IMG/VR virus record: IMGVR_UViG_3300027896_005002
Span: 352,030 to 416,029 of that record
Length of the DNA: 64,000 nt
Strand: one strand, 5' to 3'
The notes beneath the pieces were generated by a model. The model worked only from the letters and a program-made list of their open reading frames with translations. It did no database searches and had not been told where the DNA came from. A program made the translations under genes and the position numbers. Positions 5,033 through 64,000 of the stretch are shown here, piece by piece (the stretch's first letter is position 1; every line of letters starts with the position of its first letter).

Positions 5033-5059
5033 GTATTACTCCATACTATAATTTTTATA

Positions 5060-15483: not shown

Positions 15484-16267
15484 GAAATGTCCTTTCAACT
15501 ATTTTATTTCTAATTTTTCTTGTTATAATCAATGTCTTAATAATTTTAGATAATTTTTTTCCTTTTTTTGATTCACCAATTTTTCTTTTTGTTTCTTCAG
15601 ATAATTTTTTTCCTTTTCTTGACTCACTAATTTTTTTCCTAGCTTCTTCAGACATTTTTTTACCTTTTTTTGATTCACTAATTTTTCTTCTAGTTTCATC
15701 AGAACATGGTCTATTATAAAAATTAGGATTGTTTTTTCTTGTTTCATTCATTTTTCTTTTCACTTCATCTGAAAGATGTTTACCAAATAAATAATGATTT
15801 TCACCTTTATTTGATTCACTTATTTTCTTTCTAGTCTTTTTTGAATGATGCTTGCCAAACATTGGATGATTTTTACCTGACTTTATTTCACTTAATTTCT
15901 TTTTATGCTCTTCAGTAAATTTCCTACCCTTTGATGCTATACTTAATTTTTTTCTAGTTTCTTCTGATATTATTTTACCCTTACCACCTTCATTTAAGTT
16001 ATAACCTTTTTGTGGATTCATAGTATTATGCATTTTTATAAAATACTGTTCAGCTTTATCTAAAGTAGAGTTGTCTAAAGTATTACATTTTATACTCCAC
16101 TCAAATTTATCAAACCCATACTTTCTAAGAGCTCTATGAAAATAAAGATCATCATTTTTCATAGCATCTTTAAAATGTTGAATCCTTCGTTTTTCTAAAG
16201 TTCTAGTAGTCTGACCAAAATAAAGTTTTCCGTTTATTTTATTTTTAACTTGATAAATTATAGACAT
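15476..16267 (-). mobile_element. Free-standing GIY-YIG homing endonuclease with NUMOD3 repeats
   Basis: IIYQVKNKINGKLYFGQT..LEKRRIQH, E..FI, GYNLNEGG and repeated SEETRKKISES motifs; Lys-rich composition unlike its neighbours. Confidence 0.9.
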
Positions 16268-34656: not shown

Positions 34657-35377
34657 TTGTTTGTCCTGTTGGTATGTTGACTATATCAAGAGTTGATCTA
34701 TCATTTCTAATAGCACCTGGTGTTGGAACAGTTGTAACATTAGTAAATGATAAAACTCTACCGGGATAAACTTCTTTTGTTACTTTGAATGTAAAATCAT
34801 ATTCAAGTTGATATGGTTTTTCTGCAATTTCATTAAGATTAAAACTATCAAAATATCCTCTATACACGGCATCGTCATAATTCATTACTACATAGCCTTG
34901 AGCAAGTATACGATTAGTTTTAGAATCATACAATGTTCCATTATTTCTATAAATCTGTACAAATTGTTCAAACGATTTAAAATTATCTGTGTCTCTACGA
35001 CCATCACTTGTTAATCCTAATTGACCGTAAAAACTTGCAGATTGTCCAGATGCTGATAATGAATCTAATTGTTCACCCCAATGTTCTTCAACAAAACCAG
35101 CCCAAGTTCTTTTATGATTAATTAATTGACTGTATTGTTCAGATAAATTATGTGGATTAATTTTCATTGTCAAATCTGGTAATGTATAACTACTTGGTAA
35201 TCCACCAATTTGCCAAATAATTAATTTTTTATTTCTAACTGTACCTTGTCTTACTTGACTAGGAATAGGAATACCTGAATATTGATCAAGATTCCTATTA
35301 AGTCTGATATCAGTTTCACTAATAGTATTTATCGTGTTTTGTAATCCAAAAATTGCATCACTTGTACTTATACCCAT
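34649..35377 (-). CDS. Tail tube initiator-like protein (paralogue 1)
   Basis: Aligns to the neighbour: GLTSDGRRDT/GLTTDGRKDT, IYRNNG in both, YDDAVYRGYF/YDDVIYRGSF. Confidence 0.65.
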   Translation of the reverse strand: MGISTSDAIFGLQNTINTISETDIRLNRNLDQYSGIPIPSQVRQGTVRNKKLIIWQIGGLPSSYTLPDLTMKINPHNLSEQYSQLINHKRTWAGFVEEHWGEQLDSLSASGQSASFYGQLGLTSDGRRDTDNFKSFEQFVQIYRNNGTLYDSKTNRILAQGYVVMNYDDAVYRGYFDSFNLNEIAEKPYQLEYDFTFKVTKEVYPGRVLSFTNVTTVPTPGAIRNDRSTLDIVNIPTGQTNG

Positions 35378-47227: not shown

Positions 47228-48274
47228 TTATTCTTCTTCATATTCGGATATAGCACTATATAGACATCCTCTAGCTACTGCAAACATGGGATCCTGTGCC
47301 ATTCTAATATCTTTAATATTAAATGGAAATTTAATTTTTTCAATTTCTTTTTTGAAAACAACATCAAAAGATTTTATAAGTGATGTTCCACCAGCTAAAA
47401 CAATTGAAATAGGTTCTGGAAATTCGGGAACATCTTCAGCTTGTGACAATTTCTTTTCAAAACATTTAATAACATAATTTATAAGATTTATATAAAAAAT
47501 GCGTATAGATTCTTCATGTCGACCTTTTGGAGCTAATAAATCAATGCCTGCTTCTTTAATTGCAGTTATTTTTGATGTTCTTTCACCAATTGCCATGGCA
47601 GCACTATTATCAATCCAATCACCTGATCTTGATACTGAAAATTCAATTGATGCTGTCCCTAAATAACTCAAACATGCATTACACATACCGGCACCAAAGC
47701 TAATTGCTAATCCAGTAAAATTTTCCTCATCAAGTTCAGAATAACAAATAGCTCTTGCTTCATTAATGGGCTGTGCATCAAAGCCAAAAGATTCAATAAA
47801 TGATTTTAAAACATTCTCGTGATAAATAATATTATAATCGGCATCAATTGGATTTGCAGGAATTGAAAATTTACAAACTTCTTTATCACAAATAGGTTCA
47901 CCCAAAACATTTTTAATAATTGTTTTTATCATTAATAATGCTTCAGGTTCTCTTGTACTAATGACACCTTTTTGTAAAGGTCTGCGAACTTCTCTCTTAA
48001 ATATATTTGCAAAATTAAGAGCTTCTTGACCGATTACATATAATGATTTAGCATCATCAGATTCAATATAATGTGCTTTATTTAATGTCAACATATTACG
48101 AGAAAGTTTATCATTTTCAATATCAAAAAAAGCATCTCGTTGTGTTCTAATCTTTACTTCATCATCTTCTTGCATTATGGCACTATTAATAAATGCTGTG
48201 CCGATGTCTGCACCTATACCTTTTTGACGTTTAACTGGGATGTCCGTCTTTTCTTGTTTTTCATCAGTTGACAT
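47228..48274 (-). CDS. Actin-superfamily ATPase (volactin/MamK/MreB-like)
   Basis: All five actin-fold motifs in order: GADIGT (phosphate 1), PINEARA (connect 1), ISFGAG (phosphate 2), LAGGTS (adenosine), DPMFAVARG (connect 2). Start at the ATG at 48274 (SD AAGGAAGG). Confidence 0.9.
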   Translation of the reverse strand: MSTDEKQEKTDIPVKRQKGIGADIGTAFINSAIMQEDDEVKIRTQRDAFFDIENDKLSRNMLTLNKAHYIESDDAKSLYVIGQEALNFANIFKREVRRPLQKGVISTREPEALLMIKTIIKNVLGEPICDKEVCKFSIPANPIDADYNIIYHENVLKSFIESFGFDAQPINEARAICYSELDEENFTGLAISFGAGMCNACLSYLGTASIEFSVSRSGDWIDNSAAMAIGERTSKITAIKEAGIDLLAPKGRHEESIRIFYINLINYVIKCFEKKLSQAEDVPEFPEPISIVLAGGTSLIKSFDVVFKKEIEKIKFPFNIKDIRMAQDPMFAVARGCLYSAISEYEEE

Positions 48275-48326
48275 CTTGACCTTCCTTTTTAATTGTTTAA
48301 TTTTCATTTGTTTCATAAAATCTCCT

Positions 48327-50441: not shown

Positions 50442-52469
50442 CTAAAACATGGAATTTTCAAAATTTATAGTTCTGCCCTTAGGATCATCAAAATCAGGTC
50501 CTTTATCAGTTCTTATCTTATCAGCTTCTTGAAGCTCTCCATCTTTTATAACATTGTCATCTGTATAATGAGCATGTGGATTTCTTAATCCAACAAAATT
50601 TCTATAATTAAGTAAATCTAACTTCATTGATGTCACAAACTCATATCTTATATCTGTCATGTCGACACTTTCAACTGAAAAATGTTGTTGTGTCGGAATA
50701 CCTTTTATATCCGGTGTTGAAATAGGACCTATAGCATATATTTGTCCTCGTCTACGAACAATAAAATCTCTTTGCGTAATCGTTGGCGAAATTGTTGTCC
50801 ATGTTTCTTCTATATTTTCAAGTTTCATACCTCGTTCAGTCCACATTATCTTTTGATCAGACTTAAATGGCGATATTCTTATTTCATAAGGTCCTTCATA
50901 ACCACCAATAAAAGCAGTTCCCCAACATTTTTTACAAGGACCAACTTTTGCTTGTTTATGTGTGCGTTCATCTTTCAAATAACATTCACATTTCCTGCCT
51001 GTTGTCTTTTTAATAAATAATAATACTCTTTCTCCGGCTTGATCTAATAACCATGAATTTCTTCTTATTGCCTCTAAATACATATAATCTAATCGTTCAC
51101 CGTTTGCTGTCACAGGTTCACATATATTAAGTCTAGTCTCACTACCATCACTTAAAATAGTTGTAACTTTATAATGAGGTAATGCTGACAAATTCATTCT
51201 AAATAAATTGACCATATACTTATAAGTAATTGTTACAACAGATGTCGGTAATGGAACAACAGGTTCAACCCATTTATTTAAAACATTATCAAATACTCGT
51301 TCAGTTTCAAGTTTAACAATGCCCGCTAGACCATCAACAGATTTTATTGTAGCTAATCTATTATCAACAAGAACTTGAACCGATGCCGGTTTATCAGAAT
51401 ATGGATCTAGATTTGTAGTTGTATTTGTTTTATTGGTAACTATAGGAACATTTCTAACTTGGATATTATAATCACCTCTAACATCTTTTATTAATGGCAA
51501 AAATGTTAATCCATCATTTATATGAAAATAATCAAATTGTACTTCTAATGGTTTATCTGAACTTTTAGCATAAAAACTTACTTGTAAATCAATACCAGAA
51601 AATCCTAAATAAGATCTCATTAACACCCAACTACTACCATCAAAATAAGATGTTGATACATCAGTTCCTGTTCGACTTATTCTAAATTTACCTTTAAAAT
51701 CAACTGTTACAATCTCAGTTCTATCAATTATTTGTGAACTAACCATTAATGTACTAACATAATAATCAAATGCAGCAGTGCGATATCTAGATATTTTTAC
51801 AAACGAATAATCATCAATAGATACAATAAACCCGACCTCAGAATTAGATAAAACATCAGTCACAGGCCAATTAAATATTTCAAATTGTGTCTCAATATCA
51901 AATTGATCTCTCATATAAAATTTTGATCTAAAATATGCTTGTCTATTGTTTCCAAATACATCAACAAAATGAAGAGCACCAGATTGATTTATTAATCTAT
52001 CAGGATCTAATGCTTGCCATCTGCTATCATTCACAATTTGACCAGGAAAATCGGTAGCAGCATCGTCAACTTTCATTTTAAATTTAAATTGTTCTGATAC
52101 ATCTTCTTGTACAACCAAGACATTCAATGCAGAGTCTCTATAAAATGTCGTCGTTACTGGAACGTCATTTACTTTAATAAAGGTTTTGTCTTTTACAGAA
52201 TAAACATGATCTGCAGTTATCGAATCATGTGAAACAATATTCTGTAAATATTGAGCATCAACTTGTGATCGATAAATATTATAGCCAATAATATCAGAAT
52301 TCATAGGCATCATATCATCCCAACAAATATCTAATGTGTTTTTAATATAAGGAAAACTTACCGTCGCATTAGTTGGAACAATATTATTTTCTTTTGGCAC
52401 AATTGTTATTGGCGGTACAACATGACTATGTTCATGTTCAATGCAATTTTCATCATCAAAATCGCTCAT
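50442..52469 (-). CDS. Head-closure/neck-like protein with FN3 and ConA-like beta-sandwich additions
   Basis: C-terminal EAIRRNSWLLDQAGERV..KCEC...CKKCWGT..IGGY Cys-cluster domain of myovirus neck proteins; N-terminal W....IIGYNIYRS. Confidence 0.5.
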   Translation of the reverse strand: MSDFDDENCIEHEHSHVVPPITIVPKENNIVPTNATVSFPYIKNTLDICWDDMMPMNSDIIGYNIYRSQVDAQYLQNIVSHDSITADHVYSVKDKTFIKVNDVPVTTTFYRDSALNVLVVQEDVSEQFKFKMKVDDAATDFPGQIVNDSRWQALDPDRLINQSGALHFVDVFGNNRQAYFRSKFYMRDQFDIETQFEIFNWPVTDVLSNSEVGFIVSIDDYSFVKISRYRTAAFDYYVSTLMVSSQIIDRTEIVTVDFKGKFRISRTGTDVSTSYFDGSSWVLMRSYLGFSGIDLQVSFYAKSSDKPLEVQFDYFHINDGLTFLPLIKDVRGDYNIQVRNVPIVTNKTNTTTNLDPYSDKPASVQVLVDNRLATIKSVDGLAGIVKLETERVFDNVLNKWVEPVVPLPTSVVTITYKYMVNLFRMNLSALPHYKVTTILSDGSETRLNICEPVTANGERLDYMYLEAIRRNSWLLDQAGERVLLFIKKTTGRKCECYLKDERTHKQAKVGPCKKCWGTAFIGGYEGPYEIRISPFKSDQKIMWTERGMKLENIEETWTTISPTITQRDFIVRRRGQIYAIGPISTPDIKGIPTQQHFSVESVDMTDIRYEFVTSMKLDLLNYRNFVGLRNPHAHYTDDNVIKDGELQEADKIRTDKGPDFDDPKGRTINFENSMF

Positions 52470-52473
52470 AATT

Positions 52474-52959
52474 TTATTCTTTCAAAAAGTTTTCAATGAT
52501 TGGAAATAATTCATCTGCTGTATTAAAAGCATTAACATTTTGTTTTGTGTTAGTCCAAACATCAAATTGATTAACTCTCAAAAATGATTTTGATTTCAAA
52601 ATATTTTTATTATATGAATATCCAAAAATATTTGGATCAGACAATCCAAAAATAGCTATTCCTGGAGTTACCAAGCTCATACAATTGCACATATGAGGTA
52701 AAAAATTATCAACACTTATCCAAGAATAACAATCAGATAACTTTTGTTGCAACTTTTCAAATGATAACCCGTACATTACGTCATCTACATTTTGTAAAAC
52801 TTGTTCACCAAATGTACCAATCTGAATTAATTTGTAATTTAATGTTTTAAGTAATGGTATTAGTTGTATCCAATATGGATACGACTTTGGATGTGTAGGT
52901 GTAAAACTATAAGGACTAATAATAATAAAATCACCAACCTTTTTAGTTCTAATATTCAT
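52474..52959 (-). CDS. GT9 (heptosyltransferase-like) C-terminal Rossmann half
   Basis: IIISPY...KSYPYW..LI, WISVDNFLPHM and GIAIFG.SDP..FGY motifs. Confidence 0.7.
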   Translation of the reverse strand: MNIRTKKVGDFIIISPYSFTPTHPKSYPYWIQLIPLLKTLNYKLIQIGTFGEQVLQNVDDVMYGLSFEKLQQKLSDCYSWISVDNFLPHMCNCMSLVTPGIAIFGLSDPNIFGYSYNKNILKSKSFLRVNQFDVWTNTKQNVNAFNTADELFPIIENFLKE

Positions 52960-53537
52960 TTATTTTTCCATAATTTTTTATGTGATTTACTTATTTTTCT
53001 TTTAGTTTCTTCAGAATGATGAAATTTACCTTTTAAAGCTTTACTTAATTTCTCTTTTGTTTCTTTAGAAAGATGTCTACCTAACATCGGTGGTTTTTGA
53101 TTTTTTCTAGCTTCTCTTATTTTTGTTTTTGTTTCTTCTAAAAGATGTTTACCTTTCCAAAAACCTTTTCGTCCAAACATTCCATTTTTTTTACCTCTAT
53201 TAGCTTCACCGATTTTTCTTTTTCTTTCATCAGAACATGGTAATCCGCATGAACCATCACCGCCTTCAGTATCATTAGTTAATGGCCATTTTAATTTTCT
53301 ACCAAAAGCTATCCAATTTTTTTCTCTTTCCTGCCAAATATTTTCATCACATTGTTCTAAAATACAATAATTTGGTTTTAATCCTTGTTTAAGTAAAGAT
53401 TGAATCCAATAATATTTATGTGAAAGGCGCTTACTCTTAAGATGACCATTAAATCTATCATATGGATTATTTGCTTTACCAATATAACGTACTTCTAAAG
53501 TTTGAGGATCAATTAATCCATAAATAAATGTTTTCAT
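52956..53537 (-). mobile_element. Free-standing GIY-YIG homing endonuclease with NUMOD3 repeats
   Basis: FIYGLIDP...VRYIGKANNPYDRFNGH, E..WI, LTN.TEGGDG and HSEETKRKIS motifs; ATGA overlaps at both ends. Confidence 0.9.
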
Positions 53538-55267
53538 ATATTATACATTTGTTTATAAGCTTCAGCCAATGTCTTTTTCCATGCTTTATCCGTCATGAAT
53601 TTATAAACGTTGTATTGATCTATATTATTTAATAAACTTTTAGCATCTGCAATCGAAGCTTGTTTTATATTCTTTATATCATTAAAAACTTCGGGATAAG
53701 TTGTAAAAAATATGTGTGTTTTATTTTTATTTTTATTAAAATAATCATTCAAAATACTTTTAAAACAAAAATGATCTCCAATTCCATTTTCTAAAACAAC
53801 AAATGAATAATCATTTGGTCTTACATTCCACTCAAACATCTTTCGCATAAAGACTTGTTCATCTTTAAGTGCCATATTAGCAGCTTCATCATGTGATCTA
53901 TTTCCTCCTGCCGGATTACAGAAATGCCATGTTTTAGCACTTGGATCAATTAATAACTTATAACCTTTTCTCTTTATCTCATAAGTCAACATAGTTTCTT
54001 CTCTATGTCCTATAGGAGATAAATTCAAATTATAAGCTGCAATTGACTTACGATATATGAATGAGCTATATAAATGATCAACTTCTTTGATTAAATAATC
54101 AGTTTGTAAAAACCATTGATCATTTAGTCCTAGAAAAATATCTTCAATTTTATTTGATGTAATTGCTGGTGCATACTTTATTGCAGTAGAATTAATTACT
54201 AGTCCTGCAATTGCTCCAACATTATAATCAACATGTCGTATAAGTTTTTCTAATACATCATTTTCTGGTACATTATCATCATCTAGACGCCATATCCATT
54301 CAGTTTCTGCAATTTCCAATGACTTGTGATAATTTAAAACTTGACCTTTTGCTTCACCAAATATTACTTTCCAAGATATATTGTAAAAATCAAACAATGA
54401 AAAAATATGACTATATATTGGATCCGTTCTTAAGTCTTTATGTTCGTTCCAGCGTTCAGGCGGTAAAGAATCATCAAAAATAATAATGCACTTTGGTTTA
54501 TAAGTTTGATTACATACTGCAGTTAAAGTTAATGGTAAGGTTGAAAACTGACGATTTTTTGATGAAATTACACAAGTAATATCTACATTTTTTGCCTTTG
54601 TTTTTTGTATCTTTTTAAATTTATAAATCTTATTTGATCCTATACTTACTTGACCTTTGTCACCATAAACATAAAAATGATTTACTTTCATAAGTAAAAA
54701 ATTATTAAAATCAAGAAATTTTATAATCTCATCTGGCCAATGATCTTTTACTGTATGAATCTCAGCATAAATATAGTCAAGTTTATCAATAAATTCCGTT
54801 TTAAGACTCAATAAAATATCATATTCAGCACCTTCACAATCAATTTTTAAAATAAAACTTTCATCTTTATATTCTGTCATTATTGCAGATAAAGTATTTA
54901 CTTTAACAGATTCACTATTATTTTCACATTTATCAGTTGTAATAGCTAATCCACCAGTGCCAACTGTATATAATGTCTTAATTTCATTACTAATAGCTTC
55001 ATTTCTAATAATAATATTTTTAATTTTATATTTTTCAATATTTTTTGATAATTTTCCAAAATTTTTAGATTCAGGTTCTATTGCAATTATTTGCTTTGGT
55101 TTGAATTCAGATGCAAATATTGAAAACATTCCAACATTTGCACCAATATCTATTACAATTTTATTTTTTATTTCTTCTTCTTCTACACAATATGAATTTT
55201 TTACAAATACTTCATCAAAAATAAAATTATCTTCTCTTTTTAAATCAATGTACTTCTCTTCAAACAT
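53534..55267 (-). CDS. FkbM-family methyltransferase + GT2 glycosyltransferase + GT9-like N-terminal half
   Basis: VIDIGANVGMFS and LKIDCEGAEYDIL (FkbM); CVISSKNR, IIIFDDS and WIWRLDDDNVP (GT2); C-terminal VVLENGIGDHFCF (GT9 start). Confidence 0.85.
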   Translation of the reverse strand: MFEEKYIDLKREDNFIFDEVFVKNSYCVEEEEIKNKIVIDIGANVGMFSIFASEFKPKQIIAIEPESKNFGKLSKNIEKYKIKNIIIRNEAISNEIKTLYTVGTGGLAITTDKCENNSESVKVNTLSAIMTEYKDESFILKIDCEGAEYDILLSLKTEFIDKLDYIYAEIHTVKDHWPDEIIKFLDFNNFLLMKVNHFYVYGDKGQVSIGSNKIYKFKKIQKTKAKNVDITCVISSKNRQFSTLPLTLTAVCNQTYKPKCIIIFDDSLPPERWNEHKDLRTDPIYSHIFSLFDFYNISWKVIFGEAKGQVLNYHKSLEIAETEWIWRLDDDNVPENDVLEKLIRHVDYNVGAIAGLVINSTAIKYAPAITSNKIEDIFLGLNDQWFLQTDYLIKEVDHLYSSFIYRKSIAAYNLNLSPIGHREETMLTYEIKRKGYKLLIDPSAKTWHFCNPAGGNRSHDEAANMALKDEQVFMRKMFEWNVRPNDYSFVVLENGIGDHFCFKSILNDYFNKNKNKTHIFFTTYPEVFNDIKNIKQASIADAKSLLNNIDQYNVYKFMTDKAWKKTLAEAYKQMYNI

Positions 55268-55277
55268 AAACCACTCC

Positions 55278-55925
55278 TTATAGATTCCATTTATTTTGAT
55301 AATAACTTTTATCTATGCAAATATCTTTAACTGCTGATACATGATTTACTAAATGAGGTATCACTTTTATTTTATAATTATTTTTTCTCATTACATTACA
55401 ATAATCTAAATCATATAAATGAAATCCTTTTATATCTTCAGAAAATTTTAAATCAGTATTAGTTGCCATAAACATGCCATCAATATAATTTACATCATCA
55501 AAACTCTCATTAACTGTCCATAACCAAAATTCTTTCTGTTTACCACTTAATACTTGTCCCACTATATCTGATCTATTACACTCCCACCAAAAACCACGTG
55601 GATTTCCTTTAGTACCTACTAAACCAACAAGACCTGTATCTGGAAAAGAATTAAAAATAAAATCTACTCTACAAAATAATGGATTTAAATTATTATCCAT
55701 TAAATCAACATCTTCATGAATGAAAAATTTTGTTTTAAATTTACACTGTAGTATAGCTCTATTATAATTTTCACATATTGAAGTCTCTCCACAAACCTCA
55801 ACTACTTGTAAATCAGGCAATTTATTATTGTTTAAATAATCTTTAATGGGATTAAGAGATGGTAATAATACGGATTCAAAAACATCATGATTTTTTATAC
55901 TACAAATTACTGAAAACATTATCAA
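55278..55925 (-). CDS. GT2-like (GT-A) glycosyltransferase
   Basis: SICENYNRAI, FFIHEDV, DGMFMAT and GFHLYDLDYC motifs. Confidence 0.8.
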   Translation of the reverse strand: MIMFSVICSIKNHDVFESVLLPSLNPIKDYLNNNKLPDLQVVEVCGETSICENYNRAILQCKFKTKFFIHEDVDLMDNNLNPLFCRVDFIFNSFPDTGLVGLVGTKGNPRGFWWECNRSDIVGQVLSGKQKEFWLWTVNESFDDVNYIDGMFMATNTDLKFSEDIKGFHLYDLDYCNVMRKNNYKIKVIPHLVNHVSAVKDICIDKSYYQNKWNL

Positions 55926-55996
55926 GTTTCTTTTTGTTCAATTTTCTAATATCAAATATTCATATTCATATTTATTTGCATTAATTTTACTTTACT

Positions 55997-57640
55997 TTAC
56001 TTTGAATTTTGATAACAATTTATGATACAATTATAAACTTCATCAATCTCAGGTAAATAGTCACTCCAAGGACCTTCTTTAGATTCAGCGGTTGCACCAC
56101 CTTCAATCCATGTTGTTGGTCTTTGATCACAATCATCCAAAGTTAACTTCTTATATAGTGCAATTGCTCGATGATAGTTAGACACTTCACCTTGTTCAGT
56201 TTTTCTATAAGGTAATACATGATCTGGATGTTTACATGTAGGTATAAGAACAATCCAATTATTGAATGCACCTGCTATATGAACTGGAGCAGAATCATTT
56301 GACAATAAAACTGGAGCTCTAGATATAGCACTAATAAGACTTCCAACAGTCGTGCGATCAATTAAACTAAAAGAATTACTTGGTAAATCTAATTGAAATG
56401 CACCTCTATTTGTCTGATTATCAGTTCCAATTAAACAAACAGGGGCTTTAGTAGATATTTTATTTACAAGTTCTTGCCACCATTCTCTTGGAAATGTTTT
56501 ACTTTCCCAATGTCTTCCAGGATGAACAAGAACAGCTTTACTAAGATCAAAACCTTCCAATGTAGCATTTAATTCATCATCATCTTCTTTTTCTACAGAG
56601 AGTTTTATAATCTTTTCTTGCAATGGAAGAATTCTATGCATAGTGGCTAAAGAACAATAATCAACTGTATGGCACATTAAATTAGAGACAACAGAATATG
56701 TAACAGTCGTGGGATCAGGAAATGTTAACATTCTAAAATAAGGATAATCACTTTGTGATTGAAATTCCTGATGTCTACATACATTATATGGTATATGTTT
56801 AAAAAGTCTGGGCCAATGAGTTAAAATATTAACATCAGCATCTTTATAAACTTTTTTAATGTATTGTATTGTAGGTTCTGCATCAATCTGATCACCCATT
56901 CCCCCAGAAACAATTACAGCTATATGTCTTTTGTAATCATAATTTGGAGAATCTTCTCGCCATTTTTTCAAATCTTTGCCAATTAAGTCTTTAATACCTA
57001 CTGTTGTTGTAAAATACTTATAACCTGCATAATGTATAATATATGAAGCATGTCTTTCTTCACCGGAAAAATCTAAACATGTCATTCGATTAAATTTATA
57101 AGACAAATCGTACATTAAAGATTTATCTTCAGGAATTCTTCCAGCTTCATCAAGAGCAATTGTTAAATTCAAATAACCTTGTTCAAAATAGCTTGAAAAT
57201 TCTAAATCAGGTTTTTTAAAAATATGTCTATGACATTTTGATGCAATAATCACTCCAGTGTTATAATATTTGCCATTCCATCGAAGCTTTTCATAGTTCA
57301 CACCATAAGCTTGAGATGTTTCTACCAAAGAATATTCACGAGAAACAAACTTAGCTTCATTAAACATTCCAAGTTGACCATAAGGAACTTTATCAAATAA
57401 ATTGGGACAGTCATCACGAATAATAAGATCAGTATCAAGATAAATAATTCTATCAAATTTATTAAGAAGGTCTGCTATTCTAAATTTTTCCCAATGTGGA
57501 GTCGATGAAAAAGACACACCATTAAGAATAATAAATTCTGCTCCTATTTTGTCAGCATAAGCTTTTAAAATAGGATGTGTAAATTCCGCTAATGATTCAC
57601 TTTCTTCACCTATGCACAATGTAACTATTGCATATTTCAT
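55997..57640 (-). CDS. GT8-like + GT9 bifunctional glycosyltransferase
   Basis: IIYLDTDLII, YYNTGVI and YIIHYAG (GT8); GGMGDQI, VLVHPG..W.SK.FP..WW and LLSNDSAPVHIAGAF (GT9). Confidence 0.85.
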   Translation of the reverse strand: MKYAIVTLCIGEESESLAEFTHPILKAYADKIGAEFIILNGVSFSSTPHWEKFRIADLLNKFDRIIYLDTDLIIRDDCPNLFDKVPYGQLGMFNEAKFVSREYSLVETSQAYGVNYEKLRWNGKYYNTGVIIASKCHRHIFKKPDLEFSSYFEQGYLNLTIALDEAGRIPEDKSLMYDLSYKFNRMTCLDFSGEERHASYIIHYAGYKYFTTTVGIKDLIGKDLKKWREDSPNYDYKRHIAVIVSGGMGDQIDAEPTIQYIKKVYKDADVNILTHWPRLFKHIPYNVCRHQEFQSQSDYPYFRMLTFPDPTTVTYSVVSNLMCHTVDYCSLATMHRILPLQEKIIKLSVEKEDDDELNATLEGFDLSKAVLVHPGRHWESKTFPREWWQELVNKISTKAPVCLIGTDNQTNRGAFQLDLPSNSFSLIDRTTVGSLISAISRAPVLLSNDSAPVHIAGAFNNWIVLIPTCKHPDHVLPYRKTEQGEVSNYHRAIALYKKLTLDDCDQRPTTWIEGGATAESKEGPWSDYLPEIDEVYNCIINCYQNSK

Positions 57641-58858
57641 CTATCTTAAGTCCCTTGCTGGTCTGCCCCATGTTCCAGACGCATTAATGTTTGATAATAA
57701 TGATCTTTTCCAAGTTCCCGCAACATTAACCCATAATATAGGTCTACGTTTCCATACTCCTGCTATATTTATCATTATGTCAATTCCTGTTTGCATTGTT
57801 ACGAAACTATGAGCACCAATAACTGCAACAGGAGATGAATAATTAGTAAGTGTATTATTACCAATTTGTCCAAATGTATTTGTTCCCCAACCCCAAATAG
57901 TCCCAGTACTTTTCAAACCAAATATGCATGGTCCTCCAGTAGTTCTAATTTGAATAAAACTATGAGCACCTATTACTGCTACAGGTGATGAATAAGAATT
58001 TGTTGTGTTATTTCCTATTCCATTACCAAAACCCCATGTCCAAACAGTTCCATCAGATTTTAAACCAGCAGTCGTAAAATTTGTAGCTTGTTGAATATCA
58101 ATAAAACTATGAGCACCTACAACTTGTACAGGTGACGAATAAGACGTAAGATTATTAGTACCAAGTTCGCCATAAGAATTACTTCCCCAACACCATACTT
58201 GTCCTGTTGATTTTAATCCAAATGTTGCATATGTACCCAAAGCAAATGCAATAAAACTATGATTACCAACAACAGCCACTGGAGATGTTTTTGCAGTTAT
58301 ACTATTATCACCTAATTGACCAAATCCATTAGAACCCCAAGTCCATAAACTACCATCAGCCTTTAACCCAGCAGAAAAATTAGCAGAAGTTATACCACCA
58401 GTTCTGATTACTCGAAAACTATGACTTCCTACAACCTGAACTGGAGAAGAACGATTTGTAAATGTTCCATCACCTAATCCTGCAGCTTGATTATTTCCCC
58501 AAGCCCAAGCTTGTCCATTAACTTTTAATCCCATACACAAACGAGCACCTGTTATAACTTGAATAAAACTATGAGCCCCTACAATAGTTACTGGAGAAGA
58601 ATAGGAATTTGCAGTATTATTTCCTATTTGTCCATAATCATTTGCACCCGTTACCCAAGCAGAACCATCTTGTTTAAGTCCAATGTCATTTGTAAGTCCT
58701 GCTTCAATTATCATAAAACTATGAGCGCCTAAAACAGCAACTGGGGAAGAATAAGATGTTGGTTGAGTATTAATGCCTATTTGACCATAAGAATTACAAC
58801 CCCATGACCACATTAACCCGCCGGTTTTATAAGCCGTCATATTATTTGCACTACCCAT
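57641..58858 (-). CDS. RCC1/BLIP-II-like 7-bladed beta-propeller, putative fibre-tip adhesin
   Basis: Seven GLK.DG..W.WG.N..GQ.G.N....YSSPV.V.G.HSF repeats plus three C-terminal N(I/V/A)(A/S)G.W units. Confidence 0.85.
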   Translation of the reverse strand: MGSANNMTAYKTGGLMWSWGCNSYGQIGINTQPTSYSSPVAVLGAHSFMIIEAGLTNDIGLKQDGSAWVTGANDYGQIGNNTANSYSSPVTIVGAHSFIQVITGARLCMGLKVNGQAWAWGNNQAAGLGDGTFTNRSSPVQVVGSHSFRVIRTGGITSANFSAGLKADGSLWTWGSNGFGQLGDNSITAKTSPVAVVGNHSFIAFALGTYATFGLKSTGQVWCWGSNSYGELGTNNLTSYSSPVQVVGAHSFIDIQQATNFTTAGLKSDGTVWTWGFGNGIGNNTTNSYSSPVAVIGAHSFIQIRTTGGPCIFGLKSTGTIWGWGTNTFGQIGNNTLTNYSSPVAVIGAHSFVTMQTGIDIMINIAGVWKRRPILWVNVAGTWKRSLLSNINASGTWGRPARDLR

Positions 58859-58958: not shown

Positions 58959-61900
58959 TTAAGTTACATATTGTACATATATTGTTCCATAAGGAATACC
59001 TGAAGTAGATGGTGGATCACCTGTTCCATAACGAATCGGTGCAACAACATTTGAAGTTCCTGCAACATCGCCTGTAATAGTAACAGAGTTAAATGATGGA
59101 TCAGTCCCAACATTTCCAGAATAACCAGAAATTCCACTATATCCTGACTTTCCTGAATAGCCTGACGTCCCTGAATATCCTGAATATCCTGATATGCCTG
59201 AATATCCACTTGTTCCTACACCTGAATAACCTGAAATACCCGAATATCCACTATAGCCTGATATACCTGAATATCCTGATGTTCCTACACCAGAATATCC
59301 TGATGTTCCTACACCAGAATATCCTGATGTTCCTACACCACTATATCCACTTTGTCCTGAATATCCCGATTGTCCTGAATAACCAGAAATCCCTGAATAT
59401 CCACTATAGCCTGATATACCTGAATATCCTGATATTCCTGAATAACCACTTTGTCCAGAATATCCCGATTGTCCTGAATAACCAGATGTACCTACACCAC
59501 TATAACCACTTTGTCCTGAATATCCTGAAGTTCCTACTCCAGAATAACCGCTCTGTCCAGAATAACCGCTCTGTCCAGAATATCCTGAAATGCCTGAATA
59601 TCCTGATGTTCCTACACCACTATATCCACTTTGTCCTGAATATCCTGAAATACCTGAATACCCTGAAGTTCCTACACCCGAATAACCTGATGTTCCAGAA
59701 TAACCACTTTGTCCTGAATAACCACTTTGTCCTGAATATCCTGAAATACCAGAATATCCTGAAAGACCTGTAGTAAGAGGACCAAATATTGATGAAGATG
59801 TACTACCTTCATATACGAAATGAATCTTTGTTGTGCTTGCACTACGTCCATATATTTTTACAACAATTTGATCTGTTACATTTAACCCATGTGATGACGA
59901 ATCATATTTATATACTACAAATTCTTGAGCACTTAATAAAGTAGTTGATGTTATAGCAGGTGATACTATTTCAAATAAAAGAGTTTCAGTTCCACTAGGA
60001 TATGCTCGGGTATAAACTTTTGCAACTACAAAATCTCCAGTTGAAACAGCATCTACATAACTCCATGCATGAAATACCCAATAGCCACTTGGTATGTAAG
60101 TTACAGTAGGATCACCATAAACAGTAACATAATTTTTAATCAAAATATCATCAGGCGGAGCAACAGTTCCAGAATCATCTTGTTGTCCTCCAGATGGAAT
60201 AGATCTATTAAGTTTATTGTATAATGGAAAAACAGTTACATTTTCAAAGAAAAATGTTGTCCCTACCAATCCACTGTAACCTGATGATCCTGAATAGCCG
60301 CTTTGACCTGAATATCCTGAAGTACCTGAATAACCAGATGTGCCTATACCAGAATATCCTGAAGCACCAGAATATCCTGAAGTACCTACACCAGAATATC
60401 CACTTTGTCCAGAATATCCTGATATGCCTGAATATCCTGAAGTTCCTACTCCAGAATATCCTGATTGTCCTGAATAACCAGATGTACCTACACCAGAATA
60501 ACCACTTTGTCCTGAATATCCAGATGTACCTGAATAGCCTGATGTTCCTACGCCAGAATAACCACTTTGTCCTGAATATCCTGACAAACCATCAATTCCA
60601 CTATATCCTGATATTCCAGAATAGCCTGATATTCCTACACCACTATATCCACTTTGTCCTGAATATCCCGATTGTCCTGAATAACCTGACGTTCCTACGC
60701 CAGAATAACCTGATGTTCCAGAATAACCTGACGTTCCTACGCCAGAATAACCACTTTGTCCTGAATATCCCGATTGTCCTGAATAACCTGATGTTCCTAT
60801 ACCCGAATAACCACTTTGTCCAGAATATCCTGACAAGCCATCAATTCCACTATAACCTGATATTCCTGAATAGCCACTTTGTCCCGAATATCCAGATACC
60901 CCACTATATCCTGAAGTGCCTGAATATCCACTTGTACCTATGCCTGAATAACCTGATATTCCTGAATATCCCGATGCACCATCAACTCCAATATAGCCTG
61001 ATGCTCCTGAATATCCTGACACTCCACTATATCCACTTTGACCTGAATAACCTGATGAACCACTATATCCTGATGTTCCTATTTGACCTGAATATCCTGA
61101 TATTCCTAGTGTACCATCAATTCCTGAATAACCAGATTTTCCACTATAACCACTAACTCCTGTTGTTGCAGTCAATTTGCCACTATATCCAGAAACACCA
61201 CCAGTAACTACTATTGTAGATCCATCTGCAATATTAGTCAAATTTACGTCTAATGTAATATCATTTATACCTGGTTGATCTACAACATAAAAATTGCTAG
61301 ATCCAGGTATTAAATTCTTAAATTGAAGATCAACACCTTGTTTTATTTTAAATAATCCAACTCCTCCTACTCCGACATTAGACGCAGTATTTGCTTCTCC
61401 AGTTCCTCCACCAACTCTACCTGAAAGAGTTCCAAATTTATTTGCATTAACGATCTGAGCTTCTAAAGGATCATTTAAATCTGTACAACCCTGTTTAACT
61501 ATTATCCAACATCTAAAAACATCTGCTGAATTAAAAGGATTTTGCGCAATCAATTTATTTGTAGCAGCTTGAGCATATGCTAAATCTGGATATACTACTT
61601 GACCGTATTGAAGATCATTTGCATCTTCTGGAGCATAAAGCGACATTGTTTGAATTGTCCAGCCTCCAGGTGTAATGTCAGACACAAGACCCAATCCCGA
61701 CCCTGTGTCATAATGTTCTGGATCTATGATTGTTGTCGGTGCTAAATCATTTACCCAAACACCAGGAGCTGATTGATAATAATATTGAAACGTCACTGGC
61801 TGTTCTGAAGCTGTAGGATAAATATTAGGTTGTTTTTTGTCAACAGTATAATATGTACCATTATCCCATACATGACCTTCTGATCGATCAATACTTAAAT

Positions 61901-64000
61901 TTACTCCACTATCAGTTCTCGGAAAATATTCATTGCCATCAATATTAAATGGCCCAAATGAATCCCAAAAACATTGTGTTTGAACCGCCATGTCAGGTTC
62001 AAAATTAGGCTCTGTCAAACAATTAATAAGTGTTAACCTATTATTATGATCTATCCAACCTATTCTAATAATACTTCTAAGTTGAACAGGTGTAAATTCA
62101 GATACTTGTAAAACTATAGATCCACTTGAATTAATTCCTACAATTGTAGTATCATCTGTTGTTCTATAAGGTGTTGTTTGTCCTGTAAATGTTGACCAAC
62201 TAACAAACTGTACTGTTGGATTTAAAGTATCTGTAGTATTATCAACAATTACTCCTGTCCCAGCAGATAGTTGAAATGTATGATAAGGAGCAATGTTTTC
62301 AAGTGATAAAATACCTCCAACCAATAAACCCGTGGAATTTGCATTGTATAGAAGTTCAATTTGTTGAGAACTTAATGGTTGACCAGAATATCCTGATATT
62401 CCTGAATATCCACTGTGTCCAGAATATCCCGATGTACCTACACCACTATAACCACTTTGTCCAGAATATCCAGAAATACCGCTATAACCACTTTGTCCAG
62501 AATAGCCACTAATGCCAGAATAACCTGATGTACCATCAATTCCTGAATATCCACTAATACCACTATAACCTGATAATCCTAATTGTCCTGAATATCCACT
62601 GCCTCCCGAATAGCCAGATATACCACTGTAACCTGATGTGCCATTAATTCCCGAATATCCACTTTGTCCTGAATATCCTGAAGTTCCTACGCCAGAATAT
62701 CCGCTTTGTCCAGAATAACCACTTGTACCTACACCAGAATAACCACTTTGTCCTGAATACCCTGAAGTACCAGAATAACCTGATGCTCCAATATTACCTG
62801 AATATCCACTTATGCCTATTTCTCCCGAATAACCTGATGTGCCTACACCAGAATATCCTGATGTTCCTACGCCAGAATATCCACTTTGTCCTGAATATCC
62901 AGATGATCCTATACCTGAATAACCACTATATCCTGAATATCCTGATGATCCTATACCTGAATAGCCTGATACTCCTATACCTGAATAGCCTGATGTTCCT
63001 ACACCTGAATAGCCAGAATAACCACTTATTCCTGAATATCCTGATACAGCTGATACTGTAAAAGTAGTATCAATAAAAGATGCTCGTGATGATCCTTGAT
63101 ATACAAAGTGAACAGTTCTTGCAGTCGCATTGTTATTAAAAACTAATACTCTAACAACAATTCTATCTGTAGTCAATAATGTAATATCATTTACGACTGT
63201 ATAAATTACTACTTTATTTTGTGCAGTCCCAGATGTTGTTGCTGTTATTGCAGATGTTGCATCTGATATAAACAAAGAAGTAGTACTACCATCTATTCCT
63301 CGCTTACATACTTCAAATTTTGCAGTTACTATTGGACCACCACCTACGGCACTTACCCAAAACCATCCATTAAAAGTCCAGTTTCCTGCAGGTATTGATA
63401 ATTGTCCGGGAACATTAATTTTTGTTATATAATTGTCTATAGGCACACCGTTCGGGTCATCATTTGTAATAGATAATGATTCATCTATCTCAATGCCAGT
63501 TGCAGGCACTCTAGTTAATGTTTCATTATCCACTGTTAATGTAACACTAGCTCCTGCAATTTCTGCAGTTAATGTATCAGTAAATGCTAATGTTAAAGTT
63601 AAAGCAGATACTATACTTATTTCATAGACACCATTATTAAAATTTGACCCTGAAACTGTTACTTTTTGTCGTGCAACCCAACCATCAGAAATAAAACTTC
63701 CTGATGTTCGAGTTATAGTATCAGGATCAGAATTAACAAAAGCTATATTTGTTCCAGTAGTTATAGGTGTAACTAAATCACTATTAGGGTTATCAAACCA
63801 CAATCTAAGTCCTGCTGATGCTCCATTTATTCCTGAATAACCACTCCATCCAGAATATCCTGATATTCCAGAATATCCACTGTGTCCAGAATATCCTGAT
63901 GTACCTATACCAGAATAACCTGATTGTCCACTGTAACCAGATATGCCTGAATAGCCACTTTGTCCAGAATATCCTGATGTACCTATTCCAGAATATCCAC
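58959..64000 (-). CDS. Gly-X-Ser (GYS-GxS) repeat fibre protein, 5' end outside the window
   Basis: The track start at 63803 is an internal TTG; the frame stays open upstream (...GYSGWSGYSGINGASAGLRLWFDN) toward the window edge. Four repeat blocks alternate with three globular inserts; fibre-like C-terminus DPP...GTIYVQY. Confidence 0.8.
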   Translation of the reverse strand, partial: GYSGIGTSGYSGQSGYSGISGYSGQSGYSGIGTSGYSGHSGYSGISGYSGWSGYSGINGASAGLRLWFDNPNSDLVTPITTGTNIAFVNSDPDTITRTSGSFISDGWVARQKVTVSGSNFNNGVYEISIVSALTLTLAFTDTLTAEIAGASVTLTVDNETLTRVPATGIEIDESLSITNDDPNGVPIDNYITKINVPGQLSIPAGNWTFNGWFWVSAVGGGPIVTAKFEVCKRGIDGSTTSLFISDATSAITATTSGTAQNKVVIYTVVNDITLLTTDRIVVRVLVFNNNATARTVHFVYQGSSRASFIDTTFTVSAVSGYSGISGYSGYSGVGTSGYSGIGVSGYSGIGSSGYSGYSGYSGIGSSGYSGQSGYSGVGTSGYSGVGTSGYSGEIGISGYSGNIGASGYSGTSGYSGQSGYSGVGTSGYSGQSGYSGVGTSGYSGQSGYSGINGTSGYSGISGYSGGSGYSGQLGLSGYSGISGYSGIDGTSGYSGISGYSGQSGYSGISGYSGQSGYSGVGTSGYSGHSGYSGISGYSGQPLSSQQIELLYNANSTGLLVGGILSLENIAPYHTFQLSAGTGVIVDNTTDTLNPTVQFVSWSTFTGQTTPYRTTDDTTIVGINSSGSIVLQVSEFTPVQLRSIIRIGWIDHNNRLTLINCLTEPNFEPDMAVQTQCFWDSFGPFNIDGNEYFPRTDSGVNLSIDRSEGHVWDNGTYYTVDKKQPNIYPTASEQPVTFQYYYQSAPGVWVNDLAPTTIIDPEHYDTGSGLGLVSDITPGGWTIQTMSLYAPEDANDLQYGQVVYPDLAYAQAATNKLIAQNPFNSADVFRCWIIVKQGCTDLNDPLEAQIVNANKFGTLSGRVGGGTGEANTASNVGVGGVGLFKIKQGVDLQFKNLIPGSSNFYVVDQPGINDITLDVNLTNIADGSTIVVTGGVSGYSGKLTATTGVSGYSGKSGYSGIDGTLGISGYSGQIGTSGYSGSSGYSGQSGYSGVSGYSGASGYIGVDGASGYSGISGYSGIGTSGYSGTSGYSGVSGYSGQSGYSGISGYSGIDGLSGYSGQSGYSGIGTSGYSGQSGYSGQSGYSGVGTSGYSGTSGYSGVGTSGYSGQSGYSGQSGYSGVGISGYSGISGYSGIDGLSGYSGQSGYSGVGTSGYSGTSGYSGQSGYSGVGTSGYSGQSGYSGVGTSGYSGISGYSGQSGYSGVGTSGYSGASGYSGIGTSGYSGTSGYSGQSGYSGSSGYSGLVGTTFFFENVTVFPLYNKLNRSIPSGGQQDDSGTVAPPDDILIKNYVTVYGDPTVTYIPSGYWVFHAWSYVDAVSTGDFVVAKVYTRAYPSGTETLLFEIVSPAITSTTLLSAQEFVVYKYDSSSHGLNVTDQIVVKIYGRSASTTKIHFVYEGSTSSSIFGPLTTGLSGYSGISGYSGQSGYSGQSGYSGTSGYSGVGTSGYSGISGYSGQSGYSGVGTSGYSGISGYSGQSGYSGQSGYSGVGTSGYSGQSGYSGVGTSGYSGQSGYSGQSGYSGISGYSGISGYSGYSGISGYSGQSGYSGQSGYSGVGTSGYSGVGTSGYSGVGTSGYSGISGYSGYSGISGYSGVGTSGYSGISGYSGYSGTSGYSGKSGYSGISGYSGNVGTDPSFNSVTITGDVAGTSNVVAPIRYGTGDPPSTSGIPYGTIYVQYVT
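59110..64000 (-). repeat. Coding tandem repeats of 18/24-nt units (SGYSGx, SGYSGxGT)
   Basis: Blocks at about 59110-59770, 60270-61200, 62380-63050 and 63820-64000; synonymous variation throughout, with a local near-perfect 24-nt triplication around 59270-59340. Confidence 0.9.

Follow-up and report, generated by a model that had tools for sequence, protein, structure and literature searches.

A 416-kb freshwater jumbo phage carries, in the middle of its virion genes, a set of soluble sugar-adding enzymes whose relatives across uncultured phages are found beside two kinds of fibre gene, namely serine-rich collagen-like genes and RCC1-propeller genes. These enzymes therefore most likely glycosylate the phage's own fibres, although this has not yet been demonstrated by experiment and no chemical, proteomic or expression evidence supports it so far. 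The stretch of DNA analyzed here, referred to as the window, comprises 64,000 nucleotides and corresponds to positions 352,030 to 416,029 of the IMG/VR record IMGVR_UViG_3300027896_005002. The original prediction that the interval 52474-57640 holds five GT domains (one GT8-like, two GT9 and two GT2) plus an FkbM methyltransferase, tightly coupled on the same strand, was confirmed. Its proposal that they form a single virion glycosylation system acting on the neighbouring fibre was only partly supported.

The interval contains five genes, all on the minus strand, at 55997-57640 (547 aa), 55278-55925 (215 aa), 53534-55267 (577 aa), 52956-53537 (193 aa) and 52474-52959 (161 aa). The junctions are 0, 71 and 10 nt, followed by two 4-nt ATGA overlaps and then by 4 nt to the next gene. 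They lie in one same-strand virion operon that runs from a collagen-like fibre and an RCC1 gene through the GTs to neck, sheath, tape measure and baseplate genes. Upstream, the collagen-like fibre gene (58959-64000, minus strand) is partial, as it runs off the window and contig end at its N-terminus. It was recognized by Pfam Collagen (E 8e-60) and by PHROG tail-fibre families and is made of (G-Y-S / G-x-S)n runs interrupted by globular domains. The Y position is Ser in 180 of 213 triplets, the runs hold 0.1% Pro and 1.2% charged residues, and the part present in the window contains 313 Ser, 144 Thr and 157 Tyr. Of note, the contig start (C1:1-5843) is another GYS ORF on the same strand that runs off the start. 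The RCC1-repeat beta-propeller protein (57641-58858, minus strand, 405 aa; Pfam WD40_RLD/RCC1, E 1.9e-52) directly precedes the first GT gene and is a candidate target or partner of it. Downstream, the 675-aa protein encoded at 50442-52469 (minus strand) is of unknown role but probably a virion protein. No Pfam or PHROG family was found for it, the nearest Atlas clusters are viral-only, with fn3, and residues ~133-320 match ConA-like/DUF1349 domains at weak scores. It was not found next to the GT genes in relatives and is not shown to belong to the module. Further downstream lie a tail-completion/Neck1-like gene, the sheath, the tape measure and a baseplate wedge.

The 547-aa protein combines two GT domains. 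Its N-terminal GT-A domain (56966-57640, minus strand, residues 1-225) scores only marginally as Glyco_transf_8 (PF01501, 24.7 bits against a cut-off of 24.3), but D69 and D71 of the DxD motif are invariant in 39 homologues. The domain (AF2 model, pLDDT 91.9) is structurally closest to PBCV-1 A64R (Z 18.4, rmsd 2.6 over 186 residues), the next best match being glycogenin at Z 15.1. The C-terminal domain (55997-56932, minus strand, residues 237-547) is a GT9-fold GT-B domain (Glyco_transf_9, PF01075, 44.3 bits) with fold matches to 3tov (Z 22.4), WaaF (Z 21.2) and TibC (Z 20.5), yet it falls far below the NCBIfam cut-offs for LPS heptosyltransferases I and II. The 215-aa protein (55278-55925, minus strand, TTG start) is a stand-alone GT-A glycosyltransferase (Glyco_tranf_2_5, PF13712, 105 bits, E 5.2e-30). 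Homologues were found upstream of the GT2/GT-B gene in two other loci, L009 and L010, and in L010 it is fused to an FkbM domain.

The 577-aa protein starts with an FkbM-family SAM methyltransferase domain (54623-55267, minus strand, residues 1-215; PF05050, 40.8 bits; NCBIfam TIGR01444, 101 bits against a cut-off of 37.7). It is followed by a GT2 GT-A domain (53843-54595, minus strand, residues ~225-475; Glycos_transf_2, PF00535, 47 bits) with an invariant DDD motif. The model of a fused homologue, P0007 (pLDDT 91.4), gave 21 ppGalNAc-T entries as the top rows (Z 18-19.8), against 16.9 for SpsA. The second GT9 domain is real but is not seen by Pfam in the window's own proteins. It is split between residues ~476-577 of the 577-aa protein (53537-53842, minus strand) and the 161-aa ORF (52474-52959, minus strand). 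Indeed, 37 fused homologues of ~510-520 aa exist, and a profile of the fused form maps positions 3-345 onto one ORF and 356-509 onto the other. The 161-aa protein shows 39% identity to gp26 of the cultured siphovirus P19250A and 40-57% identity to the C-termini of fused homologues, a homologue is present in 76 of 80 GT2 loci, and it gives a weak RfaC C-domain hit. The corresponding part of the fused model matches TibC with Z 17.2. In addition, the two halves are predicted to dock, with an ipSAE of 0.89 against a best control of 0.02, a mark that was reached by 51 of 78 solved complexes and 2 of 108 mismatched pairs.

Interestingly, a gene missed in the original prediction sits exactly in this split. 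The ORF at 52956-53537 (minus strand) is a free-standing GIY-YIG/NUMOD3 homing endonuclease (PF07460, 60.4 bits; PF01541, 23.8 bits; phrog_314) and not a glycan gene. It overlaps both neighbours by 4 nt, no intron was found by Rfam, and it forms its own unitig at similar depth in the source run.

The co-occurrence of GT clusters with GYS-repeat genes, suggested in the original prediction as a check, was positive for one part of the module. The GT2/split-GT-B family occurs in more than 589 IMG/VR contigs. Among 53 clusters at 80% identity, 24 have a collagen-like ORF within 10 kb, and 10 of 16 among clusters with full flanks, while only 2 of 119 random loci have a collagen-like ORF and 0 of 119 a GYS-type one (Fisher p 1e-12). 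Of these 24, 22 are on the same strand and 16 lie within about 2 kb. All 41 neighbouring collagen ORFs have Ser in the Y position (86% of 4741 triplets), with about 50% aromatic residues in X. In the reverse test, 14 of 120 (GYS)4 loci carry the GT family, against 0 of 119. In the same way, the unrelated P19250A has the same GT2 gene plus a 147-aa gene directly after a 1201-aa (G-Y/F-S)n protein. Nevertheless, the link is not obligatory, since only 12% of the sampled (GYS)4 loci carry this GT family within their short flanks and about half of the GT clusters have no collagen gene within 10 kb.

On the contrary, the GT-A/GT9 gene tracks RCC1 and not GYS collagen. An RCC1 gene abuts it in 19 of 22 related loci, against 1 of 119 random loci (p 2e-19). 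Close relatives of this phage have the GT-A/GT9 protein but lack the GT2/FkbM cassette, and their collagen is of the G-x-T/Q type, not G-Y-S. The module is thus not one unit, and the picture of a single fibre glycan is too simple. Elsewhere in the same genome, outside the window, two more pairings were observed, a 3xGT2+MT gene right after a capsid-family gene and a third GYS-stalk gene next to another GT2.

Taken together, the explanation that we favor, with only slightly more confidence than doubt, is a phage-encoded, cytoplasmic protein O-glycosylation module that acts late in infection on the phage's own fibre proteins and that is a composite of two independent enzyme-target couples plus accessory tailoring enzymes. 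In the first couple, the ppGalNAc-T-like GT2 domain and the TibC-like GT-B domain, made here of two polypeptides that re-associate, are inferred to start and extend a glycan on the Ser hydroxyls in the Y position of the proline-free (G-Y-S)n fibre. In the second, the A64R-like GT-A domain fused to a GT9 domain is inferred to work on or with the adjacent RCC1-propeller protein, while the 215-aa GT probably adds a further sugar. No GT has a membrane segment, the maximum 19-residue hydropathy being 1.44 or less in every one of them, and the best fold matches are to protein-glycosylating enzymes, among them A64R, which acts on a virion capsid protein. However, fold similarity cannot tell the acceptor and the Z margins are modest (19.8 against about 17-18). 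The GT2 family is nearly absent from 185,579 prokaryote genomes, in which only 8 loci were found, all on short MAG contigs from unrelated phyla. No NDP-sugar epimerase (PF01370) or nucleotidyltransferase (PF00483) lies in the window. Two epimerase/dehydratase-like genes are present elsewhere in the genome but no nucleotidyltransferase was found in the record, so donor sugars must come from the host. The likely benefits would be to stabilize a triple helix that has neither proline nor charge pairs, as the repeats hold 0.1-0.4% Pro and 1-3% charged residues, and to shield or tune the fibre surface. Of note, glycosylated Thr in the Y position is known to make a Gly-Pro-Thr peptide triple-helical (PMC11923368, citing Bann 2000 and Mann 1996).

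The main rival is host envelope modification, already raised in the original prediction, in which the GTs and the methyltransferase remodel the LPS core or O-antigen, the capsule or the S-layer glycans of the infected cell to block superinfection or to stop progeny being trapped on debris. Genomic association does not prove enzyme-substrate relations, and the position next to fibre genes may only reflect a plastic host-recognition island. Fibre regions of aquatic phages are known hot spots for cargo genes, and GTs, mostly GT8, in the tail-fibre hypervariable region of pelagimyophages were read as host O-chain modifiers (PMC7029224). GT9 and GT8 families classically act on LPS cores, FkbM-type methyltransferases probably occur in O-antigen clusters as well, and the GT2/FkbM cassette is accessory. 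Yet, no flippase, polymerase or lipid-carrier priming enzyme lies in the module, the GT2 family is almost confined to viral contigs, and scores are far below the LPS heptosyltransferase equivalog cut-offs (31 bits against 134.6). A cargo island does not predict that every neighbouring collagen gene is of the Ser type, nor the abutment with RCC1 genes. Moreover, homologues of the GT-A/GT9 gene carry inteins, which usually sit in conserved, important genes. Host-envelope modification is therefore weakened and seems unlikely, but it is not excluded.

Less likely still, the enzymes may build a glycan on another acceptor, such as a free or lipid-free oligosaccharide, a small molecule or other virion proteins including the capsid, the sheath or the 675-aa ConA-like protein, that the collagen and RCC1 proteins would bind as lectins or scaffolds rather than carry. 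RCC1 propellers and collagen stalks are common carriers of binding domains, and mycobacteriophage glycans sit on capsid and tail-tube proteins and not on fibres (Freeman 2023, as cited in PMC12619734). But the 675-aa gene is not conserved next to either GT family, and the association with the repeat chemistry itself, Ser in the Y position, fits an acceptor better than a lectin. It is also doubtful that the cassette is decaying or selfish cargo brought in by mobile elements, although an endonuclease gene interrupts the GT2/GT-B gene and could impair the GT-B domain, the cassette is absent from the closest relatives and its GC is low (25-28% against about 30%). All ORFs are intact, the catalytic DxD and DDD motifs are conserved, and the split falls exactly in the ~13-residue interdomain linker and loses no conserved residue. 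In addition, a two-ORF form is the majority state of the family (44 of 53 clusters). Finally, glycosylation of hydroxymethylated bases of the phage genome to evade restriction is very improbable. Phage GTs often do this and the genome has two thymidylate-synthase-like genes that could be base hydroxymethylases, but these lie about 140-155 kb away (C1:251418 and C1:265590), the GT genes sit inside the virion operon and not in the nucleotide-metabolism region, and the links with Ser-type collagen and RCC1 genes would have no meaning under this model.

Several known systems resemble parts of this module. Phage Gtr-type serotype conversion systems and the LPS core heptosyltransferases WaaC/WaaF share Pfam families (GT2, GT9) and carriage by phages with it, but Gtr systems use membrane proteins and a lipid carrier, none of which is present here, and scores are far below the WaaC and WaaF equivalog cut-offs. 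The TibC/AAH autotransporter-adhesin O-heptosyltransferases have the GT9 GT-B fold and transfer sugar directly to Ser in repeat-rich surface adhesins in the cytoplasm. TibC is the best match of the split GT-B domain and a top match of the other GT9 domain, but its N-terminal residues 1-96 have no counterpart in the alignment of the split GT-B domain. The chlorovirus PBCV-1 capsid glycosylation enzyme A064R (A64R), like the 547-aa protein, is a virus-encoded, soluble, multi-domain protein, but it belongs to a eukaryotic giant virus, acts on N-linked capsid glycans and has no GT9 domain, and at 16% identity no family membership can be claimed. A precedent is the collagen-like spore-surface fibre BclA3 of Clostridioides difficile (and BclA of Bacillus anthracis). 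The soluble GT2-type GT-A enzyme SgtA is encoded directly beside bclA3 and O-GlcNAcylates Thr, and Ser in peptides, in the Y position of its collagen repeats, after which further sugars, some of them apparently methylated, follow (PMC7157674). The present system is viral and not sporulation-linked, its repeats are G-Y-S with aromatic X rather than G-P-T, and its GT2 is coupled to a TibC-like GT-B domain instead of TPR repeats. In mycobacteriophages, phage-encoded GTs also sit inside the late structural operon and decorate the phage's own virion proteins (Freeman et al. 2023, as cited in PMC12619734). There the glycans are carried by the C-termini of capsid and tail-tube subunits of actinophages, while here the inferred targets are a collagen-like fibre and an RCC1 protein of a freshwater jumbo myovirus, the GT families differ and a methyltransferase is included.

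All long ORFs in the 64-kb window run on the minus strand of a linear 416,029-bp IMG/VR virus record recovered from a freshwater metagenome, with a CheckV completeness of 77% and a GC content of about 30%. In transcription order, the gene run comprises a collagen-like fibre (58959 to the window end), an RCC1-repeat protein (57641-58858), the glycan-building genes (52474-57640), a 675-aa protein of unknown role, an Ig-like protein, a tail-completion/Neck1-like protein, a Volactin-family actin, the tail sheath (41391-44162), the tape measure (35377-38034), a baseplate wedge (11452-15498) and a fibre-like giant protein. This is the late virion operon of a jumbo myovirus-type phage, in agreement with the original prediction that placed the module inside such an operon. 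Promoter and terminator scans were no better than shuffled sequences and hence say nothing about operon boundaries. Of note, the 362-aa protein encoded at 47228-48316 among the neck and tail genes matches the Volactin family of actin-like proteins (PF25216) very strongly (E 7.8e-81) and MreB weakly, an actin homologue being unusual inside a phage virion operon. DNA similarity searches of the region against 50,697 phage records gave only an 80-nt NUMOD3 stretch in SPbeta-like phages.

The first gene of the interval (55997-57640) encodes a 547-aa protein. Its N-terminal GT-A domain reaches the GT8 profile (PF01501) only marginally, at 24.7 bits against a cut-off of 24.3 and over profile positions 89-165 only, although D69 and D71 of its DxD motif are invariant in 39 homologues. 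Its C-terminal domain has a clear GT9 fold and scores 44.3 bits with PF01075 against a cut-off of 22. The next gene (55278-55925) encodes a 215-aa PF13712 glycosyltransferase. It is followed by a 577-aa protein (53534-55267) that contains an FkbM methyltransferase (TIGR01444, 101.2 bits against 37.7; PF05050, 40.8 bits against 22.7), a GT2 domain (PF00535, 47 bits against 23.3) and an extension of about 100 residues. In the GT2 family alignment, termed A1, D105, D106 and D107 are invariant in 18 sequences.

The extension of the 577-aa protein and the 161-aa protein encoded at 52474-52959, which has no Pfam family, are the two halves of one GT9/TibC-like GT-B domain. No Pfam hit to this domain was obtained in the window's own ORFs, but a PF01075 hit is on record for two fused homologues, P0028 and P0033. 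In 37 close homologues the two parts form a single polypeptide of about 510-520 aa, and a profile of the fused form maps positions 3-345 onto the 577-aa ORF and 356-509 onto the 161-aa ORF. The break lies in the ~13-residue interdomain linker and no conserved residue is lost. In addition, the two halves are predicted to dock, with an ipSAE of 0.89 against 0.02 for the best of 3 controls, a mark that was reached by 51 of 78 solved complexes and by 2 of 108 mismatched pairs. The original count of five GT domains plus an FkbM methyltransferase is therefore right.

Nevertheless, the interval does not consist purely of glycan genes, since a 193-aa free-standing GIY-YIG/NUMOD3 homing endonuclease that the original prediction did not report is encoded at 52956-53537 (PF01541, 23.8 bits against 22.6; PF07460, 60.4 bits against 20.4; phrog_314). 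Its ORF overlaps both halves of the GT-B domain by 4 nt. Rfam found no intron, so the split gene is not explained by a group I intron. A two-ORF form without any endonuclease is in fact the commoner state of the family, in 44 of 53 clusters. Mapping of the source run showed an even depth of 23-29x, with unitig breaks at both ends of the endonuclease ORF (52981-53013 and 53506-53540). No convincing endonuclease-free junction appeared, the listed joints having sides of only 20-23 nt. Depth rises to about 45-50 at the 3' part of the ORF, the NUMOD3-coding stretch that also matches SPbeta-like Bacillus phages at 80% identity, which may be due to a repeat shared among endonuclease copies or to population variation. 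Two more free-standing GIY-YIG homing endonuclease genes were found on the minus strand of the virion region, one beside the baseplate wedge gene (15476-16267) and one just upstream of the collagen gene at the start of the 416-kb contig, designated C1 (C1:6258-7019).

The module is a composite. Close relatives of this phage, which share 63-81% identity in the 547-aa protein and sit on contigs of 210-497 kb, keep the order collagen-like fibre(s), RCC1, GT-A/GT9. They lack the 215-aa GT, the FkbM-GT2 protein, the endonuclease and the 161-aa ORF, and their collagen repeats are G-x-T/G-x-Q, not G-Y-S. The GT2/GT-B pair has its own distribution. The cultured siphovirus Methylophilaceae phage P19250A (KX815270) has a GT2 gene (36% identity) followed by an overlapping 147-aa gene (39% identity to the 161-aa ORF). 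Both lie directly after a 1201-aa protein (P19250A_0023, at 3750-7355 of the retrieved locus) annotated as a tail length tape-measure protein. This protein is in fact a (G-Y/F-S)n collagen-like protein and the annotation is probably wrong. The 215-aa GT has no similarity to gp24 of P19250A.

A single-sequence search with the 577-aa protein found no locus, whereas the A1 alignment found more than 589 IMG/VR contigs, of which the best 80 loci were kept. A collagen-like ORF, defined by 10 or more consecutive G-x-y triplets, was observed within 10 kb in 34 of the 80 loci. After clustering at 80% identity this corresponds to 24 of 53 clusters, and to 10 of 16 among clusters with at least 9 kb on both sides. 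About half of the GT clusters have no collagen gene within 10 kb. Of the 24, 22 are on the same strand and 16 lie within about 2 kb, often right after the ~150-aa partner gene. Interestingly, all 41 distinct neighbouring collagen ORFs have Ser as the main Y-position residue, pooled 86% of 4741 triplets, with about half of the X positions being aromatic. Among 119 random IMG/VR loci drawn with an arbitrary 14-mer (1.03 Mb in all), 2 have collagen-like ORFs, none is GYS-type and none has the GT family (Fisher p 1e-12 to 1e-13). In the reverse direction, 14 of 120 loci found with a (GYS)4 DNA pattern carry the GT family against 0 of 119. Most of the sampled GYS loci lack it within their short flanks; these loci average only 8.4 kb.

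The GT-A/GT9 family, with 882 homologues, shows a different association. An RCC1-repeat gene directly abuts it in 19 of 22 loci, a few of which are near-duplicates, against 1 of 119 random loci and 0 of 80 GT2-family loci, while collagen genes near this family are of either type. There are thus two specific couples, GT2/GT-B with Ser-type collagen and GT-A/GT9 with RCC1. Searches of an incomplete literature collection found no paper that links these GT families to collagen-like or RCC1 fibre genes in phages, nor any description of the conserved GT-propeller pair. Some GT-A/GT9 homologues of about 900 aa (P0146, P0162-P0164, P0202 and P0209) carry a LAGLIDADG intein domain (PF14528).

None of the five proteins of the interval has a membrane segment, the maximum 19-residue Kyte-Doolittle hydropathy being 1.44 or less. 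A scan of 185,579 prokaryote genomes with the GT2 family, limited to two peptide patterns, found 8 loci, all on short MAG contigs from unrelated phyla including an archaeon, which looks like mis-binned viral DNA. Sequence searches of the PDB were uninformative and gave nothing for P0008, a relative of the fused GT2/GT-B homologue P0007. AlphaFold models were confident, with pLDDT of 91.9 and 91.4. The predicted N-terminal GT-A domain matches best PBCV-1 A64R, which glycosylates a virion capsid protein (Z 18.4, rmsd 2.6 A over 186 residues), the next best being glycogenin (Z 15.1) and LgtC (Z 14.7). The GT2 domain has a predicted GT-A fold (Z 17-19.8) and matches polypeptide GalNAc-transferases in the top 21 entries (Z 18-19.8), compared with 16.9 for SpsA and 17.9 for K4CP. 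The split GT-B matches best the protein O-heptosyltransferase TibC (Z 17.2), and the other GT9 domain matches 3tov, WaaF and TibC at Z 22.4, 21.2 and 20.5, respectively. These matches are leads and do not prove what the acceptor is.

Other glycan genes and fibre genes are found outside the window. The contig start is also a GYS collagen ORF on the same strand (C1:1-5843, 1947 aa) that runs off the end. As the 1679-aa piece at the other contig end (63998-64000) does likewise, the assembly probably broke inside one repeat-rich fibre region. The two pieces may be one giant fibre gene, which would then be 3,626 aa or longer, or two adjacent ones. A 1019-aa protein with three GT2 domains and two methyltransferase-like domains (C1:16202-19261) lies directly downstream of a Phage_capsid-family gene (C1:19354-20226; 354-1226 of the retrieved locus L208), an arrangement that recalls the glycosylation genes of mycobacteriophages and chloroviruses. 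A full-length DnaJ homologue with J domain, zinc-finger and C-terminal domain (C1:11789-12787) is encoded between this capsid-side glycan gene and the fibre gene. The genome also contains an epimerase-like gene and a third glycan cluster (C1:326528-334892) that holds a GT1-like gene, two O-methyltransferases (Methyltransf_24/CmcI-like), a 321-aa NDP-sugar epimerase/dehydratase, a 743-aa GT2-like protein and a GT8/Nucleotid_trans protein. Moreover, a third, short GYS-collagen-stalk protein of 431 aa (C1:52833-54128) lies directly upstream of another GT2 gene with a Glyco_transf_7C motif (C1:51595-52818), which is not a member of the A1 family. No nucleotidyltransferase (PF00483) was found.

Taken together, the original proposal of a virion glycosylation system is partly supported and refined, and glycosylation of virion proteins is held to be somewhat more likely than not on the basis of genomic association and fold likeness. 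In the mechanism inferred here, the enzymes would act late in infection in the cytoplasm. The GT2/GT-B pair would start and extend an O-glycan on Y-position Ser of the (G-Y-S)n fibre, the 215-aa GT would add a sugar, the FkbM domain would methyl-cap the glycan and the GT-A/GT9 enzyme would service the RCC1 protein. A rationale for the tight co-inheritance is that the repeats have 0.1-0.4% Pro and 1-3% charged residues and therefore lack both usual stabilisers of a triple helix. Of note, glycosylation of Y-position Thr turns a random-coil Gly-Pro-Thr peptide into a triple helix (PMC11923368, citing Bann 2000 and Mann 1996). A more far-reaching and rather unlikely, though not excluded, hypothesis is that phages have evolved a 'sweet collagen', in which a proline-free, uncharged (G-aromatic-S)n fibre can fold into a stable triple helix only after Ser O-glycosylation by a dedicated, virus-restricted two-domain enzyme (a ppGalNAc-T-like GT2 plus a TibC-like GT-B), co-inherited with the fibre across hundreds of unrelated aquatic phages. 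A second virus-specific enzyme (A64R-like GT-A plus GT9) would similarly service RCC1-propeller fibre proteins. Fibre glycosylation would then be a widespread, unrecognised layer of phage host recognition and immune or defence evasion, and many 'LPS-modifying AMGs' in aquatic phage fibre islands would be mis-assigned.

Modification of the host envelope is the usual reading in the field for such genes (PMC7029224), GTs in the fibre islands of aquatic phages being routinely annotated as host LPS modifiers, and it remains possible. Yet it predicts neither the repeat-type specificity nor the RCC1 abutment, and it fits poorly with soluble, apparently virus-restricted enzymes and with a module in which no flippase, polymerase or lipid-carrier enzyme lies. 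Glycosylation of the phage DNA was considered and set aside as unlikely, and the view of the cassette as dead cargo is also unlikely. If phages do glycosylate their own receptor-binding fibres, this would change how such genes are annotated, add a post-translational layer to host-range determination and offer enzymes for making glycosylated collagen-like materials.

With regard to known systems, the scores are far below the equivalog cut-offs for LPS heptosyltransferases I and II (TIGR02193, 28.3 bits against 185.3; TIGR02195, 31.2 bits against 134.6), and the 161-aa ORF scores 21.5 against 437 for RfaC. A phage Gtr-type (GtrA/B/C) serotype-conversion system relies on a membrane-embedded flippase, a bactoprenol-linked GT2 with transmembrane helices and an integral-membrane serotype-specific GT, and no such gene was found in 50-59 kb. 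Virion glycosylation in phages has been shown only for some mycobacteriophages. As in virion glycosylation systems of the mycobacteriophage or chlorovirus type, the GT genes lie within the late structural gene block, on the same strand with 0-71 nt junctions and flanked by fibre, neck, sheath, tape-measure and baseplate genes. Two large, apparently virus-restricted GT families were found here, each tied to one class of fibre gene, Ser-type collagen for one and RCC1 propeller for the other. The fibre has the genomic features of glycosylated bacterial-type collagen-like proteins of the BclA/BclA3 type, with Ser in the Y position in 85% of triplets and GT genes within 1.3-6.5 kb on the same strand, a pairing that recurs in 24 of 53 clusters. 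The nearest proven analogue is SgtA of Clostridioides difficile, a GT2-type enzyme that is encoded next to bclA3 and O-GlcNAcylates Thr and Ser in the collagen repeats (PMC7157674).
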